A stretch of DNA of 63,698 nt, filler included, from Perkinsus chesapeaki ATCC PRA-425 (GCA_013115145.1; 4 parts of 4 records of this genome joined end to end with filler, not necessarily neighbours in it), one strand, 5' to 3'. Positions 70 through 27,629 are shown, numbered from the whole stretch's first letter. Program-made: numbers and translations. Notes: generated by a model from the sequence alone, not told the origin.

Positions 70-2480
70 TTTTTTCCTATCATTTTTGCCTTAACTAATA
101 TCGACCAACTGCGACGTTCCTATTACAAATGAGCTTTCGTTGAAGCTTCAAGAACCTGTCTTTGGTGACCTGTCAGATGGTACCCGAGCCTAGACCGTAT
201 TCTTAGTAACGTATAACTCTTATCGTAATTACTTTTATGTTACTTATTGAGTAGTTCTTATTTAATATTAATTATATTCATTACTACTTTCATATTACAA
301 CTATTATATTATAATATTTTTTACTCTTCTTGCTTATTTCTCGCTGTTCCCCATTCCGCGAACTTCCCTCGTTTTGCAACTTCCCAGTAGTGTACATTTT
401 CAGCCCTCTTATATGGTTTTCCTTCTTAAAAGTGGCGAGGAGCTGGTGTCCAGTTTTTGGTCAGCTCTTCCTGCCACACTGAGTATAGCAGCAAGCCGAC
501 TCAGCGATAATATAGCAACGCTTAATGAGGCATTAACATCTCAGCAGTGGGAGAAGGATGTTACCGGGTAATATGGTTAAATTATTTGCCATGTTTTCAA
601 CTATAATGCAACTAGTGGTTTTAATAATGGACAGAAATGTAACTAGTGGTTTTAATAATGAACAGAAATGTAACTAGTGGTTNNNNNNNNNNNNNNNNNN
701 NNNNNNNNNNNNNNNNNNNNNNNNNNNNNNNNNNNNNNNNNNNNNNNNNNNNNNNNNNNNNNNNNNNNNNNNNNNNNNNNNGAACAGAAATGTAACTAGT
801 GGTCTTAATAATGAACAGAAATGTAACTAGTGGTTTTAATAATGAACAGAAATGTAACTAGTGGTTTTAATAATGGACAGAAATGTAACTAGTGGTTTTA
901 ATAATGAACAGAAATGTAACTAGTGGTTTTAATAATGAACAGAAATGTAACTAGTGGTCTTAATAATGAACAGAAATGTAACTAGTGGTTTTAATAATGA
1001 ACAGAAATGTGGCAGCATGTGCACAGACTGTATAATAGTTATTATATAAATCTAGCAAAACTATAACGATTTGAATTGGGTTAAAGACATATAGTAGTAG
1101 ATGCAATATATTGTAATGTGAATATTATTATGTACTACGAAAAATCATACAGGTTGAACTTTTCAAGGTTTTCTTGGATAAGTCGCGGATGTTCCCGCAA
1201 ATATCCACATTTCCCTTCTTTGGGATGATAAATCCTTGCAGTCGCTTCATTACTTCCTAGCAGTCTCGGTGATCTAATTTTCCCCTTCGAAAAAGGAATT
1301 TTTCCACGGCGGAACTGCTCAAGTGACAAAGGATTTTCGCATGTGGATAAGATGCCTTCTCCCTCAGAGCATGGCGGTCACTTCCGCGTAAACTGCAATT
1401 GGTGCAATGCCTGTTCCTTTTAATGGGAGTGCTGTTGGCGCTGTCAGCCTGGTGCTCGGTACGCAGTAATAAACAGGAAAAAAGAAGTAAAAGAAAAACG
1501 GCAAAGAAATGCAAGGGACATCTGGACGAATTTGGGCGACGAAATTTGGACTCAATAGGAAAGTGCAAAGATAATGTAATATTCAGGGTAGGTGCCGCCG
1601 AATTACGTTATAAGGCACTAAGCTCATATTATGTATTAATTGGAAATATCGGTTCGGAGTAGAGAGCCCCGGGAGGTATCTGGGCAGTGTCCCTCGGTGG
1701 CATGGGAATTCCTGATATGGTTTGCAATGCCGAAACTTTGCGGGAATTTTCTCGGATCAAACGCGTGTGCACCAAGCCCGATGCAACCTGATAGAGTTCC
1801 TGGGCTGGTGGATGAATCTACCAGTTTGCCCGTCTGCTATTAGGGAACAATAAAACGTTCTAGTTTGGAAATACGACAGACAGAAGGGAAATCCGCTTCT
1901 GAGGAATTCGAGTGTGAATTCGCGCTTGGTGATGGATGTGATTTGATTCAGTGAGATTCTCAAGCGTTCCTGGGCCTGAGCATCTGTGACTAAACTGACT
2001 TTCTGGCTTACTCGATAACTAAGCGCGGCTATGGAGTTTGAGGCTGTAGGAAAATATGACAGAAGCCCAGATAGTGAAAACTGTTTCTAATAAATTTGAG
2101 AGCAGTGGGAATGTGCCCTCGGCAGTCTGCCATGAAATTATTATTATGGTTCTTTTTGGGGAGGATAATTGACTAGAGGTCAAAGTTTGGACGCTCAGGT
2201 CACCACAGGGACCATAACACCCACCACAGTAGCTTCGCCATTGCGACACTCAAAAGATTCTTCAAGAGGTCGAATGACGCCTCCCCCAAAAAACTGTGAT
2301 GAGTGGGGAGTCTTCATTTACCACAACCGAGATGGCTCACATCGTTCGCGATGCGTTATGATGTGCGATGATGACGATGAGGCTGCTGAGGAATTCATTT
2401 TGCGATCTAAATTAAGGTATCATAGACATCAACGACGGACAAGTGGGATGAAGAGGAATGCTTCCATGGTAGTTAATAAT
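70..2480 (+). CDS. Multi-exon hypothetical gene, probably 5'-truncated; exon structure unresolved
   Basis: Coding-like blocks bounded by GT/AG, e.g. CDVPITNELSLKLQEPVFGDLSD (~105-178), SGEELVSSFWSALPATL...WEKDVT (~430-567), hydrophobic LVQCLFLLMGVLLALSAWCS (~1400-1455) and the ORF at 2169-2582. No family recognised. Confidence 0.3.
610..1010 (+). repeat. 31-bp tandem minisatellite (AATAATGAACAGAAATGTAACTAGTGGTTTT), about 10 visible copies, spanning an N gap
   Basis: The period is seen directly (GAACAGAAA at 782 and 813). Variants are GAAC/GGAC and GGTTTT/GGTCTT. No spacers. Confidence 0.97.
683..781. other. Assembly gap (N run) inside the minisatellite
   Basis: 99 N with the same repeat on both sides. 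Confidence 1.
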
Positions 2481-23414: not shown

Positions 23415-24311
23415 TTATACTGATATTTTTTCAGAAATGTAAGTATAAGGAAAATGAGAAGTGAATACGGGGGTCTTCAAGAACATCTCTGCCTTCCCAA
23501 GTAGACTCCACTTATGAAGGTCATTCTTCACAGTGCGAAGGCTTAACTCAACTGATGCACCGGCACTTGCTGTGAACGGAATACCCGGAACACGTTGTTC
23601 ATAGGAGGCCGACATGTTGAAGCCGAGATTGAATGATTTGCCGGCGAAAACGTCGCTTGACTGAACCGGAATACTCTCCATGTCCATAACCAGATAACCA
23701 TATGCATAAAACTTGAAGTGGACATTGGATACAAATGAGCTGCGCATGATGCCTAACTGACCAGGGTGATGAAGCTCCTCGACATGGGTGGCAAGGAAGA
23801 TTGAAATCGCAGCTGAACTCTTATTGCCATAAGAGAGCAGTTCAGCGTGACCCCCAGCCTCCACGTCGAGCTTCTGCACCTCCTCATCTTCATAGAGAGC
23901 TTTGAGACCAATGGCTGTACTCTCGTTCGGGTTGAAAATGTCAAAGAAGTCGACCGCAGCGTCGACTTTTGTTGTTTTAGTTGTGTCGTCTGTTGATTTG
24001 TTTTGTTCTTGAAGTGAGCCGTGGAAGCAAAAAGGATAACTTTCATTCCGGCTGGTTGGGGTACAATTAGCCGGGAAGGAGAAAGTGCCATTGGACGACT
24101 CGGAAGCTTGCTGGACACCTTTGTCAAAAGAGGCAACTCGTTTCTCATTCATTTCCTTGTTATCAGCCTCGGCCTTCTTCAGGGTTTCGATCAGATCCGC
24201 TAGTGTATCGTCATCATCATCGAACTTGAACGAAGAGCTTGGATTGGGATGATTCTGGATGATGGCAACCGAGCTCGTTAAGCAGAAAATGATGAGCGTG
24301 ATTACCGTCAT
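23415..24311 (-). CDS. Predicted secreted hypothetical protein, paralog 1 (298 aa, intronless)
   Basis: Single ORF with a signal-peptide-like N-terminus MTVITLIIFCLTSSVA; collinear with the ORF at 26345-27220. Confidence 0.9.
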   Translation of the reverse strand: MTVITLIIFCLTSSVAIIQNHPNPSSSFKFDDDDDTLADLIETLKKAEADNKEMNEKRVASFDKGVQQASESSNGTFSFPANCTPTSRNESYPFCFHGSLQEQNKSTDDTTKTTKVDAAVDFFDIFNPNESTAIGLKALYEDEEVQKLDVEAGGHAELLSYGNKSSAAISIFLATHVEELHHPGQLGIMRSSFVSNVHFKFYAYGYLVMDMESIPVQSSDVFAGKSFNLGFNMSASYEQRVPGIPFTASAGASVELSLRTVKNDLHKWSLLGKAEMFLKTPVFTSHFPYTYISEKISV

Positions 24312-24463
24312 GATTAGGGGGGGACTTTACAATAAACGAAAGCCTGCAAGTAAATGTGGAAGCGTGCACCTGGGGGAAGACGCAGAGCCCCGAGGTGGTG
24401 CTAGACGCGAAATCCTATTAAGGATCTCTTATTGAGCAATATTCCGAATTACAACTCAGAGGT

Positions 24464-24487
24464 CCGCCCGCTAAGAGTCGTGACCGT
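24464..24487 (-). promoter_or_regulatory. Candidate upstream element shared by the two secreted paralogs
   Basis: CCGCCCGCTAAGAGTCGTGACCGT here versus CCGCCCGCTTAAGCTGTGACCGT at 27396-27418, about 150-175 bp upstream of each ATG, in flanks that otherwise align poorly. Confidence 0.45.
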
Positions 24488-25005
24488 GAGGATTTTTCGT
24501 ACGCAATGCGTTCTATGCATCCTCATGTCCCGCTTCTGAGTCACTTTAATCCTTGAGGATTGGCCACACAGCACGTGCAAGTGGATGATCACTAATCAAG
24601 AATGCCACGGGACGCAAAGTGTACATGATAAGGCACGAATCCACTGGAAGACGGGTACAGAAGAGATAGAATTGTGCGCTTAAAGCCACTGTTTGAGTTA
24701 GACATCGAATGGCGGTCTCGCTGGCGGCGACGTAGAAATTATCGATTCCAACATTGCGAGTAGATGTAGACGGGCCCCTCTGACGAGCAGTACATCTGCC
24801 TGTGTTACACATCATGTGTATCAGCCATATAATGAAGTTTATTCCATGAATTGTGCCTGATAATATCAGGCACAGTTGGTGTACTGATAATATCATCCGG
24901 CACTAGCGAGATCTGCGCGACGCGCCATATCGGGCTCTGTGCGACACGCTTGCACATATCAGAGTTGTGATAGACAATCTGAGGTTCGCTGACTAATGCC
25001 CTTGC

Positions 25006-25027
25006 TCCGTAGCCATATTGGCTCAAG
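25006..25027 (+). ncRNA. Genomic spliced-leader sequence (SL RNA gene/pseudogene or relict SL)
   Basis: TCCGTAGCCATATTGGCTCAAG is a 21/22 match to dinoSL DCCGTAGCCATTTTGGCTCAAG (Perkinsus form ACCGTAGCCATYTTGGCTCAAG) and is immediately followed by GT. Confidence 0.75.
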
Positions 25028-26344
25028 GTCTTGGTGTACTTGTGGTTGACCTGTATTAGATATCGCTCTAGCGTATGGCGGGTCGCGTTATCTCCAGTGG
25101 CAGCCCAGAGGCTGGTACCGACAACAGATCCCTCAATGTCCTCAGCTACCGGTATTACTGGTAGTTACGTGTGTATTGCCGTGTGTGGACCCAAGGGCCC
25201 GGAGCCTCCCGCAGTAAGGGTTGTGAAGCTTTCGAATACATTAACTCTGGAAGACAGGATCATTTCTCAGTGAGAAATTCTCACTGAGGAATCCTCAGTT
25301 TCCTGTGATGTCGATGTTGAGTGGTATTCGAGACTGCATCAACGTGTGAATCTGTAGCCCTTTTTCCAGCATCTTGGCTAAGCTCCCCCCATCACTGGGT
25401 CCCTTATTGATAGCACACTCTCCTCAATGCACTCGGGAACCGAGAATCTTGGCGGTATCCTGCAGCTCCAGACTCCCGATAGTATCGTGGCGATACGTCC
25501 AAACTTAGTTTGACAAACTACGATTATCAATGTTCATCCAAATTTTCATCACTAGCATGCTTCTGAAAGCTGGCAACAAGCAACACTGATATCCAATATC
25601 GGCGAGTTGGCGACGCACAATGAAGGCCCGTAGTCCGGGCCCTCGGAGGGCCACCCTCTTCTCACCACCCACTCCCCATAAATTTTGTGCTTCAGTAAAC
25701 TAGTGCGCAGCACTAGACTCATTTGTACTCAAAAGTGGAAGTACTGATGAACTTATGCTATTCGCATAACCGCGAATATAACAATTTACAAAGATTGCAT
25801 ACTATAAATCACAGTCTTGGGCTGACATTGTCGACCACGGCCCGACCTGGTTTGCAATCCCCTTGCGACCTGACTGCTTAGCGCAACACCGCGGAATATA
25901 CGATAAAGAAGATGATGATCATATCATTATGTCTGACTGGGTCAGCTGTACACTACTACAACCAGTTAACCTTCGCCGCAGAAAACTGAATAGAAAGGTC
26001 CATCAGCCTCAGGCTCGAAGTCAGTCAAAAGTCGTTAAACTACACTTGGATTCAGAATATATCAGATAAGCTGAGTACTTTCTGTGCTACATGGCGAGTT
26101 TATATACCAAATACACCGTGATACAGCGGCTGTATTCAGTAAACCATTAGCAGCTCACATGAGCCCAAATGTAGTGAGCAAAACTTTTGCTGCAGAATCA
26201 AAAAGATGTCAACTAATAATAGGAAAATGTGAATAGTTATCCACACTGTACATCTAGCAGGGGATCATTCACTATGAGATAATCACCAATGACTAGGGTG
26301 ATAGCATAGATGCTGATTTTGCTCATACAAGATATCATGTGAAG

Positions 26345-27220
26345 TTAAACGGAGATAGATTCAGAGAAGTAATCATACGGAAAGCGCACAGTGCCAACAG
26401 GACTCCTGACGAAAGCCTCTGCCCTGCCGAGCAGATTCCACTTTCGAACGTCGTTTTTGACACTTCGGAGGCTCAACTCAACCTTTGCACCGACAGAACC
26501 GTAGGAAATACCCCTTTCGTAAGAAGCCGACATGTTGAAGCCGAGATTGAACGATTTGCCGGCGAAGACGTCGCTTGCCTGAACCGGAACACTCTCCATA
26601 TTCATGACCAGATAACCATAAGCGTACACTATGAAGTGAGGCGTGGCTACAAATGAGTTGCGCATGATTCCTAGCTGACCAGGCTCATAAAGCTCCTCGA
26701 CATGGGTGGCAAGAAAGGTAGATGCCGCAACTGTACTCTTATTGCCAAAAGAGAGCAGCTCAGCAACACCGCCAGCCTCGACGTCGAGCTTCTGCACCTC
26801 TTTATCTTCATAGACAGCTGTGAGACCAATGGCTGTACTCTCGTTCGGGTTAAATATGTCAAAGAAGTCGGCAGCAGCGTGGACTTCTGTTTTTTTAGTT
26901 GTGTCGTCTGTTGATTTGTTTTGTTCTTGGAGTGAGCCATGAAAACAGTACGCATATCCTTCGATCTGGCTTGTTGGGGTGCACTTAGGCGGGAAGGCGA
27001 AAGTGCCATTGGACGACACTGAGGCTTGCTGGACACCTTTGTGGAAGAAAGCAACTCGTTTCTTATTCATTTCCTTGTTATCAGCCTCGGCCTTCTTCAG
27101 GGTTTCAATCAGATCCGACAATGTATCATCATCGAACTTGGACAAAGAGCTCGTACTGGGACCATTCTGGAAGTTGGCAACCGAGCTCGTTAAGCAGAAA
27201 ATGGCTGAGATTACCGTCAT
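26345..27220 (-). CDS. Predicted secreted hypothetical protein, paralog 2 (about 291 aa, intronless)
   Basis: The likely start is ATG 27220 (MTVISAIFCLTSSVA), homologous to the paralog 1 start. Long identical runs are shared, e.g. DLIETLKKAEADNKEMN and KSFNLGFNMSASYE. Confidence 0.9.
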   Translation of the reverse strand: MTVISAIFCLTSSVANFQNGPSTSSLSKFDDDTLSDLIETLKKAEADNKEMNKKRVAFFHKGVQQASVSSNGTFAFPPKCTPTSQIEGYAYCFHGSLQEQNKSTDDTTKKTEVHAAADFFDIFNPNESTAIGLTAVYEDKEVQKLDVEAGGVAELLSFGNKSTVAASTFLATHVEELYEPGQLGIMRNSFVATPHFIVYAYGYLVMNMESVPVQASDVFAGKSFNLGFNMSASYERGISYGSVGAKVELSLRSVKNDVRKWNLLGRAEAFVRSPVGTVRFPYDYFSESISV

Positions 27221-27629
27221 GATTAGGGGGAAGCTTTTAGGTAAGAGAAAGCCTGCCAGTAAACAGTGTTTACTAAACACAATATTATGCTCCCGAAAAC
27301 GAATCTTACCTGTAAAATTACAGAGCTAAATCGCGGTATTTCTCCCATTAGATGATATTCTACAATTCAGGAACTGAATAGTAAGCTGCAGTATGCCGCC
27401 CGCTTAAGCTGTGACCGTCTCGATAATTTTTACGCACGCCCGTGTCCCGCATCGTAAGAACTTCTGCTGTCGAGGTTCGGCTTTTTAGACAAGTTAACCA
27501 TCAGTCGTAAATAGGAGCACAGAGGTTGGAAAGAGTAGACAAGGATGTACGTAGGCACCGCGCGGGACAAACTCGTCTTTTTACACCTACTGCTGAAGAG
27601 ACAATTCGTCGCGGTCACGTGACAGCGAC

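Follow-up and report, generated by a model that had tools for sequence, protein, structure and literature searches.

We conclude that the spliced leader-like 22-mer at positions 25006-25027 of the window most likely lies in a solo LTR of an LTR retrotransposon, an old copy that is truncated at its 5' end and comes from a repeat family designated here as family B (probability about 0.85). The window is the whole stretch of DNA that was analysed, 63,698 nucleotides made of parts of four records of the Perkinsus chesapeaki ATCC PRA-425 genome (GCA_013115145.1) joined with filler. Copies of the same leader are found in the LTRs of several other retrotransposon families of this genome, where the leader may be a built-in part of the LTR; in the literature that we found, such an arrangement has not been described before.

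The leader-like 22-mer and its surroundings

Positions 25006-25027 of the window read TCCGTAGCCATATTGGCTCAAG. The 21/22 match to dinoSL that the initial annotation reported here is confirmed, with no matches among 100 dinucleotide-preserving shuffles, and a search with the dinoSL pattern in which nt 12 was left free gives this site as its single match in the window. The GT directly 3' of the 22-mer (CAAG/GT at 25027/25028), the AGGTC...GACCT pair downstream of it and the ATG at 25075-25077, about 47 nt past the leader, are likewise present as described. The better reference for this 22-mer is the Perkinsus leader PmaSL1 (ACCGTAGCCATCTTGGCTCAAG; PMC3101222), from which it differs at two positions, having T at nt 1 and the substitution C12A. 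Searching the genome assembly (41.7 Mb, 3544 contigs) with the 21-mer CCGTAGCCATNTTGGCTCAAG and allowing at most one mismatch, we obtained 31 copies. Nearly all of them have C at nt 12, and PmaSL1 is the canonical leader in this genome; the shorter P. marinus leader, PmaSL2, has no match in it. Within its repeat family, the consensus of which is TCCGTAGCCATCTTGGCTCAAG, the window copy is the only one with A at nt 12. C12A is therefore considered to be a point mutation in a decaying copy and not a variant of the leader.

The features assigned to the locus, and the place of the leader within the full family B unit, are as follows.

24959..25126, plus strand: probable 5'-truncated, degenerate solo LTR, corresponding to family B positions 84-244 of 244 (BLASTN to L046(C1631):1171-1414)
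24959..25005, plus strand: putative U3 remnant, the last 47 nt before the leader, with GCTGAC and a pyrimidine-rich tract, conserved in other copies
25006..25027, plus strand: relict spliced leader of the PmaSL1 type, with T at nt 1 and C12A, equal to LTR positions 131-152
25028..25126, plus strand: putative R/U5 part of the LTR, with homology ending exactly after ...CAACA
25075..25126, plus strand: predicted first 17 codons of a gag ORF (MAGRVISSGSPEAGTDN) inside the LTR, by comparison with ORF 1 of the C3017 element and with families A, C and E
25110-25126, plus strand: right end GGCTGGTACCGACAACA, matching the family B terminus
Positions 131-152 of the family B unit: leader, in a unit that starts with TATTGCTGCTCC... 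and ends with ...GGCTGGTACCAACAACA

The window copy is 84% identical to the full copy on contig C1631 over 168 nt (BLASTN, E 2.6e-48), and it differs from family B by a 7-nt insertion, TATTAGA, at about 25054-25060. On the left, no significant alignment extends beyond about LTR position 74-84. We considered whether the copy could be a full-length decayed LTR and rejected this, as its left 83 nt align no better than shuffles. Because the copy is truncated on the left, it has no target-site duplication. The ATG at 25075 is predicted to be the gag start codon within the LTR; the frame that it opens exits the LTR at 25126 and reaches its first stop at 25162, in unrelated flanking sequence, and no gag or pol sequence was found anywhere in the window. 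Coding on the minus strand through the block was also considered and rejected: a frame is open there, but with respect to the other copies it is shifted by the 7-nt insertion, and so it is not conserved as coding sequence. The copy in the window is functionless. We regard the locus as an ordinary dead solo-LTR fragment, and its annotation as an SL RNA gene or as a retrogene is unwarranted.

Family B is a dispersed unit of 244 bp

When the flanks of all genomic leader copies were aligned, those of the window leader grouped with the flanks of copies on contigs C1631, C3189 and C211, and genome searches added more copies. The 47 nt upstream of the leader are conserved with the copies on C1631, C3189, C211 and C908. 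Homology between the window and other loci begins 47 nt before the leader, continues for 99 nt past it and stops abruptly; for nine other copies the end falls exactly past ...CAACA, at a distance of 92-99 nt from the leader. At full length (L046 on C1631, positions 1171-1414) the unit has 244 bp and is composed of 130 nt beginning with TATTGC, the 22-nt leader, and 92 nt ending with CAACAACA.

The boundaries of this unit are sharp. All six independent left junctions start with TATTGCTGCTCC, seven independent right junctions have the exact terminus GGCTGGTACCRACAACA, and two older copies have diverged versions of it, while the flanks are unrelated at every junction. The intact copy on C1631 has GTAC on either side, a 4-bp target-site duplication. 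Copies that are 100% identical break the assembly, with contigs ending 72-73 nt into the unit, and these broken copies can be paired by the 4-bp duplications ACTG (C3255/C3078), GCCT (C2800/C1136) and AAGT (C288/C139); the chance of obtaining all three contig-end pairings is ~7e-6. Duplications of 4 bp are the mark of an integrase or a transposase and not of LINE-type retroposition. The termini, TATTG...CAACA, are of the form TA...CA and not the usual TG...CA, and the terminal inverted repeat is weak, being reached by 36 of 2000 shuffles. Older copies have ragged left ends, which is atypical for solo LTRs. A 73-nt high-copy repeat at the start of C1631 was also considered as a tRNA, and was rejected as such.

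The family B unit as a probable LTR

The connection between the family B unit and pol comes from a single contig, C2089 (668 nt). On this contig an open frame of at least 162 aa is followed by a stop, 75 nt, the sequence AGGGGGGCG-TATA, and then the start of a family B unit. This frame can be aligned with a 798-aa ORF on contig C3017, over residues 631-787 of the latter (36% identity, E 7e-26), and the C3017 ORF has matches to Integrase_H2C2 (E 7e-5) and rve (E 1e-4), both of which are below the Pfam curated cut-offs. Since one copy of the unit is thus located directly after an integrase C-terminus and a polypurine tract, we interpret the family B unit as an LTR.

C3017 carries a complete element of 6.4 kb with two LTRs of 243 nt that are 100% identical, start with TATTGCC and end with GGGCAACA. 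The 5' LTR is followed by a PBS-like sequence, TAT-TGGCGACAGCGG, and the 3' LTR is preceded by the polypurine tract GGGGGCCG-TTTA. The element has three ORFs. ORF 1 (505 aa, MSRVQEQSSNGVDGQ...) opens 47 nt before the end of the 5' LTR. In the middle ORF, an aspartyl protease is matched weakly and an FVDD motif is present; of the named Atlas clusters, those closest to this ORF are protease-RT polyproteins. The reverse transcriptase of the element has diverged too far to be matched by Pfam. The predicted order of the element is gag, PR-RT, IN. Family B agrees with the C3017 LTR in length, termini and spacing of the polypurine tract, and has an ATG 45 nt before the LTR end (MAGRVLSSDSPGAGTNN). 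When the two LTRs were aligned in search of the leader as a clean insertion, their similarity was weak (z 2.6), and no degenerate leader was found in the C3017 LTR. Neither a 5' LTR-PBS-gag junction nor a complete element of family B was found in this fragmented assembly; the former we attribute to contigs that break inside the LTR. The two-LTR layout with PBS and gag is found for C3017 and for the leader-bearing families on C8, C61, C919 and C2061.

The unit could also be thought of as a non-autonomous DNA transposon, that is, a MITE (for example a Ginger- or Sola-like one, with 4-bp duplications and TGT..ACA-type ends) that has captured a leader-bearing fragment. Its shortness (244 bp), the 4-bp duplications and the imperfect terminal inverted repeat would all suit such an element, as would the fact that no complete family B element is assembled. 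We nevertheless consider this very unlikely, since the C2089 copy abuts an integrase C-terminus and a polypurine tract in the same way as in the complete C3017 element, the termini, the length and the internal gag start agree with those of the C3017 LTRs, and the leader occupies a like position in clear LTR pairs of other families. A SINE or other LINE-dependent retroposon, which the ragged left ends had suggested, is ruled out by the fixed 4-bp duplications, the missing tail and the junction with pol and the polypurine tract.

Comparison with true SL RNA genes

The initial annotation had proposed a solitary or variant SL RNA gene, in which the leader exon, the GT donor and an intron would be transcribed as a donor for trans-splicing. 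The 22-mer followed by GT and the small AGGTC/GACCT stem that could form downstream are what one would expect of such a gene; the intron, the T-run and the stable fold of the true genes are missing from the window copy, and we give this proposal almost no credence. The genome has two true SL RNA genes, L004 (on C411) and L012 (on C2742), which are 91% identical over positions -69 to +84. Both have A at nt 1 and continue after the leader with GTAAATATCCGGTCC...CCCTTTTTAT. The stretch that they share includes the intron (GTAAATATCCGG...) and a CCCTTTTT run. CCCTTTTTAT is located ~60 nt past the exon, and a T-run terminator would give an RNA of ~80-83 nt.

Outside the exon, nothing is common to these two genes and the window family. 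The sequence downstream of the window leader has no similarity to the intron of L004 and L012, and the upstream region of the true genes is absent as well. There is no T-run in 25028-25126, and a scan of the window piece against Rfam at E up to 1 gave no match. Genes of the L004 type form two hairpins, in which the donor is base-paired (-27.7 kcal/mol, z = -2.25), whereas the folds of the window copy (z +0.91) and of the family B consensus (z +1.26) are no better than those of shuffles. The GT itself is not a constant feature of the leader copies: the C211 copy of family B has AT in its place, and in LTR families A, C, E, F and G the leader is not followed by GT. In comparison with an SL RNA gene of the PmaSLRNA-L type, the window copy has a 22-nt exon that is equal except at nt 1 and nt 12, and shares neither the intron nor the promoter region, the terminator or the fold. 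Zhang et al. (2011, PMC3101222), using 3' RACE and blots, found that the intron-less leader copies of P. marinus are not expressed as small RNAs.

Comparison with a retrocopy of a host mRNA

The other proposal of the initial annotation was a relic of a recycled mRNA, i.e. a retrocopy of a trans-spliced host mRNA that was inserted at this locus by recycling of the dinoflagellate type and was later disabled. A short 5' UTR and an ATG do come after the leader, both dinoflagellates and Perkinsus are known to have relict leaders (PMC3101222, PMC3229502), and some other genomic copies may qualify as such retrocopies, for example L003, which lies upstream of a CCCH zinc-finger ORF. The flanks of the window copy, however, make a host retrocopy extremely unlikely at this locus. 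Homology continues upstream of the leader for 47 nt in the window and for 130 nt in full copies, and because of this conserved upstream sequence the leader is not the 5' boundary of a retrocopy. On the other side, every copy ends within 92-99 nt of the leader. A genome search for the parent gene returned no parent locus, and no multi-exon host gene was found that matches the sequence from 25028 onward past 25126. Of the two insertion marks that had been suggested for inspection, poly(A) is absent and target-site duplications of 4 bp are present at full copies; their fixed length points to an integrase, and the ORF downstream is predicted to be the start of gag.

One part of the proposal probably holds in a wider sense, namely that a trans-spliced RNA with an ORF downstream of the leader was reverse-transcribed. 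This RNA would have been that of a retrotransposon, and its leader would have arrived at the locus as part of an LTR and not as a retrocopy of a host mRNA. The idea that foldback events disabled the retrocopy has lost its basis, given that both stops on which it relied (25162 and 25285) are located beyond the LTR end in unrelated flanking sequence; the palindromes are thus unconnected with the disabling of a gene.

Other leader-bearing LTR families

Clustering the flanks of 30 leader copies yielded the SL RNA genes and several families. At least 18 of the 29 intron-less leader copies are found in LTRs, and these represent five or more retrotransposon lineages. Pairs of leaders on the same strand, 5.7-6.6 kb apart, are present on four contigs, and they mark the 5' and 3' LTRs of complete elements; the internal regions were judged from 1.5 kb at each end. 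Their characteristics are listed below.

C8, family A: polypurine tract GGGGGGCG; PBS-like TGGCGACACC; integrase homolog upstream of the 3' copy
C61, family C: PBS-like TGGCGACACC, as in family A; gag and integrase homologs, the integrase being 47% identical to that of family A
C919, family D: LTR of ~400 nt, TGTGAAG...CTTCACA; target-site duplication CACC; rve match below cut-off upstream of the 3' copy
C2061, family E: LTR of ~215 nt, TGTGACG...GCGACA; target-site duplication CTATT; PBS-like TGGTGGTCGATG; gag with zf-CCHC; weak integrase H2C2 match

G-rich polypurine tracts are present in three of the four pairs, and PBS-like TGG... sequences also in three. Integrase-domain matches upstream of the 3' copies are all below the Pfam cut-offs, and gag is located downstream of the 5' copy. 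The LTRs of families C, D and E start with TG..., and family D has a perfect TGTGAAG/CTTCACA pair; a solo LTR of this family is found at C1631:57140 with the target-site duplication GTGC. Family F consists of three LTR-like units, each with a 3-bp direct repeat around it. At another copy, L017, an rve ORF that scores above the Pfam cut-off ends 138 nt upstream of the leader. The integrases of D, E and L017 have no match at E 1e-3 to those of A/C, to those of B/C3017 or to one another, which argues that several lineages are involved. In every LTR case the leader is in the sense orientation with respect to gag-pol and lies 35-210 nt before the LTR end. The gag ATG is found 16 to ~240 nt past the leader, and in families A, C and E the frame opens 16-50 nt after it. 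Many of the relict leaders in a Perkinsus genome thus come from both LTRs of retrotransposons.

A possible role of the leader in replication

LTRs are composed of U3, R and U5, the 5' end of the element RNA being the point at which R starts. The presence of a leader within LTRs raises the question of how an LTR element replicates when its genomic RNA is trans-spliced, and a leader at the border of U3 and R would solve the problem of the first strand transfer. We infer the U3/R/U5 boundaries, the transcription start and the trans-splicing of the element RNAs from sequence. In the mechanism that we propose, the retrotransposon RNA would carry the host leader at its 5' end, and the minus-strand strong-stop DNA would copy this leader and end in its complement. 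Because such an end can pair only if the 3' LTR encodes the leader, its location at the U3/R border would make replication compatible with trans-splicing: the first strand transfer would find its homology in the leader that the RNA encodes within its 3' LTR region. Both new LTRs would then inherit the leader from the strong-stop DNA, as the first 22 nt of R. Every cycle would also rewrite the leader, provided that the pre-RNAs begin in U3 and that trans-splicing uses the AG at the end of the encoded leader; dead copies would decay, which could account for the C12A of the window copy. A leader at the U3/R border would also give the gag mRNA a 5' end of the host type.

Several properties of the leader copies bear on this mechanism. 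Among copies found at one mismatch or fewer, and at equally ascertained positions, nt 2 accounts for 7 of 11 substitutions. Nt 1 is T, A, G or C in the LTR copies and A in both true genes, and the two LTRs of one element always share the same leader variant. Variability at nt 1-2 fits what would be expected of copying through modified cap-proximal nucleotides. Copies of family F differ by exactly GTCTCAG, a sequence that ends in AG and immediately follows the leader, and this indel is what one would expect had a new leader been spliced to the AG that comes next. Even mutually unalignable LTR families all retain a near-perfect leader core.

It is also conceivable that the leader in these LTRs is a fossil of one ancient capture, with no role in replication, neither rewritten nor needed for strand transfer. 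The C3017 element speaks for this, as it is a relative with identical LTRs and no leader; having moved recently without a recognisable leader, it indicates that a leader in the LTR is not obligatory. On the other hand, families that cannot be aligned, and whose integrases are unrelated at E 1e-3, keep a near-perfect 20-nt leader core amid fully diverged LTRs, substitutions are concentrated on nt 1-2, and a 7-nt indel ending in AG is located exactly at the leader junction. We consider a single fossil capture rather unlikely. The most far-reaching proposal, to which we give slightly less than even odds, is that parasites of hosts with leader trans-splicing hard-code the leader at the 5' ends of their own transcripts. 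Several Perkinsus LTR lineages would do so with the leader as the first 22 nt of R, where it would enable strand transfer and be rewritten each cycle, and giant virus-like genomes from metagenomes, in which dinoSL stands exactly 47 nt behind a putative AAATTGA early-promoter motif at more than 100 genes, would do so in parallel.

Relation to known systems

In P. marinus, more than 100 intron-less PmaSL copies, mostly T-started, have been reported in repeats with variable downstream sequence, and their origin was left unexplained (Zhang et al. 2011, PMC3101222). If the leader is indeed part of R, this would explain the intron-less leader copies of Perkinsus. These PmaSL copies and the relict leaders of dinoflagellates (the mRNA recycling of Slamovits and Keeling) resemble the copies described here in that an RNA-derived genomic leader directly precedes a 5' UTR and an ORF, is often T-started and does not belong to an SL RNA gene. 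The copies described here differ in having an LTR as carrier, in which the leader is internal and present in both LTRs, with conserved upstream sequence and target-site duplications. Tandem truncated relics (CCATCTTGGCTCAAG repeats) were not seen here. Leader copies in LTRs could distort counts of retroposed genes in dinoflagellates and perkinsids that are based on relict leaders, and leader-bearing retrotransposons are candidate sources of the reverse transcriptase that has been invoked for mRNA recycling.

With LTR retrotransposons of the PR-RT-IN type (Ty3/gypsy or BEL/Pao-like) and their solo LTRs, the elements share identical LTR pairs, TG/TA...CA termini, 3-5-bp duplications, a PBS-like TGG..., a G-rich polypurine tract, a zinc-knuckle gag and an integrase with H2C2 and rve. 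They differ in that a host leader separates the promoter part of the LTR from the gag leader, in that the gag ORF opens within the LTR or at its end, and in that Pfam does not recognise the divergent reverse transcriptase. SLACS, CZAR and CRE1 of trypanosomatids are non-LTR elements whose site-specific insertion into SL RNA genes makes the leader their target. In both cases retroelements are tied to the leader sequence of a trans-splicing host; here, however, the leader is cargo and the insertion sites are diverse. Cer1 of C. elegans is likewise an LTR retrotransposon of a host with trans-splicing, and a leader can be added to its RNA. Its LTR, however, encodes no SL1, and SL1 is added only to a spliced 2.4-kb RNA, while the 8-kb genomic RNA is not trans-spliced (PMC3315495). 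Our search of the literature, which had partial coverage and did not include, for example, Repbase reports, found no paper that links leader copies to LTR retrotransposons.

Leader matches in public collections

The metagenome and IMG/VR collections were each scanned once for the leader, and the matches were mostly to dinoSL. Same-strand leader pairs 5-9 kb apart on public contigs of the dinoflagellate type showed no LTR-like blocks, and so gave no sign of such LTRs in dinoflagellates. A separate group of matches is characterized by the motif AAATTGA. At 126 of 234 sites, and at 106 of 132 in the viral set, this motif begins 46-48 nt ahead of leader nt 1, compared with 0-2 in controls. Most of the contigs concerned are named as giant-virus bins, the surroundings are AT-rich, and the leader is always A-started. 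On these grounds the candidate giant-virus contigs look like a second parasite that hard-codes the host leader, with AAATTGA as a putative promoter motif. At 102 of 124 such sites, an ORF of 100 aa or more begins with the first ATG past the leader, which lies at a median distance of 46 nt, and DUF4116 repeat proteins account for two of ten large ORFs behind such leaders.

Leaders encoded behind a mimivirus-type promoter motif

Copies of the spliced leader also occur in the public loci L087-L310, which are drawn from IMG/VR GVMAG bins and JGI metagenome contigs. In these loci AAATTGA, an early promoter motif of mimivirus type, lies 46-48 nt upstream of the encoded dinoflagellate leader (dinoSL) at 126 of 234 sites (examples are L148:4799-6706, L257, L277, L104 and L088). 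The DNA upstream of these sites is AT-rich, the first leader base is A in all of them, and at 102 of 124 of them the leader is followed, at a median distance of 46 nt, by an ORF of 100 aa or more. This sequence arrangement suggests that giant-virus-like genomes hard-code the dinoflagellate leader ahead of their own genes; a literature search on dinoSL behind AAATTGA in such genomes found no report.

Sequence elements around the leader in LTRs and other loci

The U3 regions of the leader-bearing LTR families B, C, D and G, and that of the related complete element on contig C3017, have in common a motif resembling GCGCATGCG / CATGCGTAC. It lies 60-120 nt 5' of the leader, in LTRs that cannot otherwise be aligned (L046:1215-1230, L018, L023, L020 and L084:2500-2520). 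This motif may be a promoter element. Directly 3' of the leader, several unrelated loci (L001, L008, L016, L022 and L028) carry the heptamer RTYTYAG in the variants GTCTCAG, ATCTCAG, ATCTTAG and ATTTTAG, and in a lake metagenome contig (L130) a Perkinsus-type leader is followed by GTCTCAA. The heptamer could be an alternative acceptor or a conserved start of R.

In locus L052 (C908:27709-30768), at positions 1091-1500 of the locus, a family B LTR copy is split by an insertion of ~410 nt. The 7-bp duplication TCAGGGT on both sides points to another small mobile element as the insert. The same LTR is also broken mid-leader, at TCCGTAGCCATCT|CCTTATG.

In locus L003 (C135:1109-4129), a leader copy is directly followed by an ORF of 398 aa (249-1442, minus strand) that encodes a CCCH zinc finger. 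This may be a host mRNA that was truly retrocopied, in which case the genome may contain relict leaders of two kinds.

Surroundings of the LTR fragment in the window

The following features surround the family B solo LTR in the window:

23415-24311, minus strand, ORF of 298 aa, first member of a pair
24849-24877, near-perfect palindrome
24910-24953, 44-nt motif GATCTGCGCGACGCGCCATATCGGGCTCTGTGCGACACGCTTGC, adjoining the LTR fragment on the left
25140-25164, near-perfect palindrome
25262-25292, near-perfect palindrome
26345-27280, minus strand, ORF of 311 aa, second member of the pair

The two ORFs are paralogues (~85% identity over 300 nt) lying ~2.9 kb apart on either side of the solo LTR. 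Both encode a protein with a hydrophobic N-terminus as well as an acidic stretch, and the pair resembles a small family in tandem whose products are putatively secreted. The upstream region, 24407-24773, has matches of 70-72% on contigs C3332 and C2915.

The 44-nt motif recurs with 93% identity on C2711 and C366, where its copy is followed by GCGTCACCTACACTTTC..., and could represent either a promoter-like element or a small repeat. The three short intergenic palindromes, with arms of 14-15 nt and a 1-nt loop, lie beyond the LTR bounds and have no relation to the gag frame.
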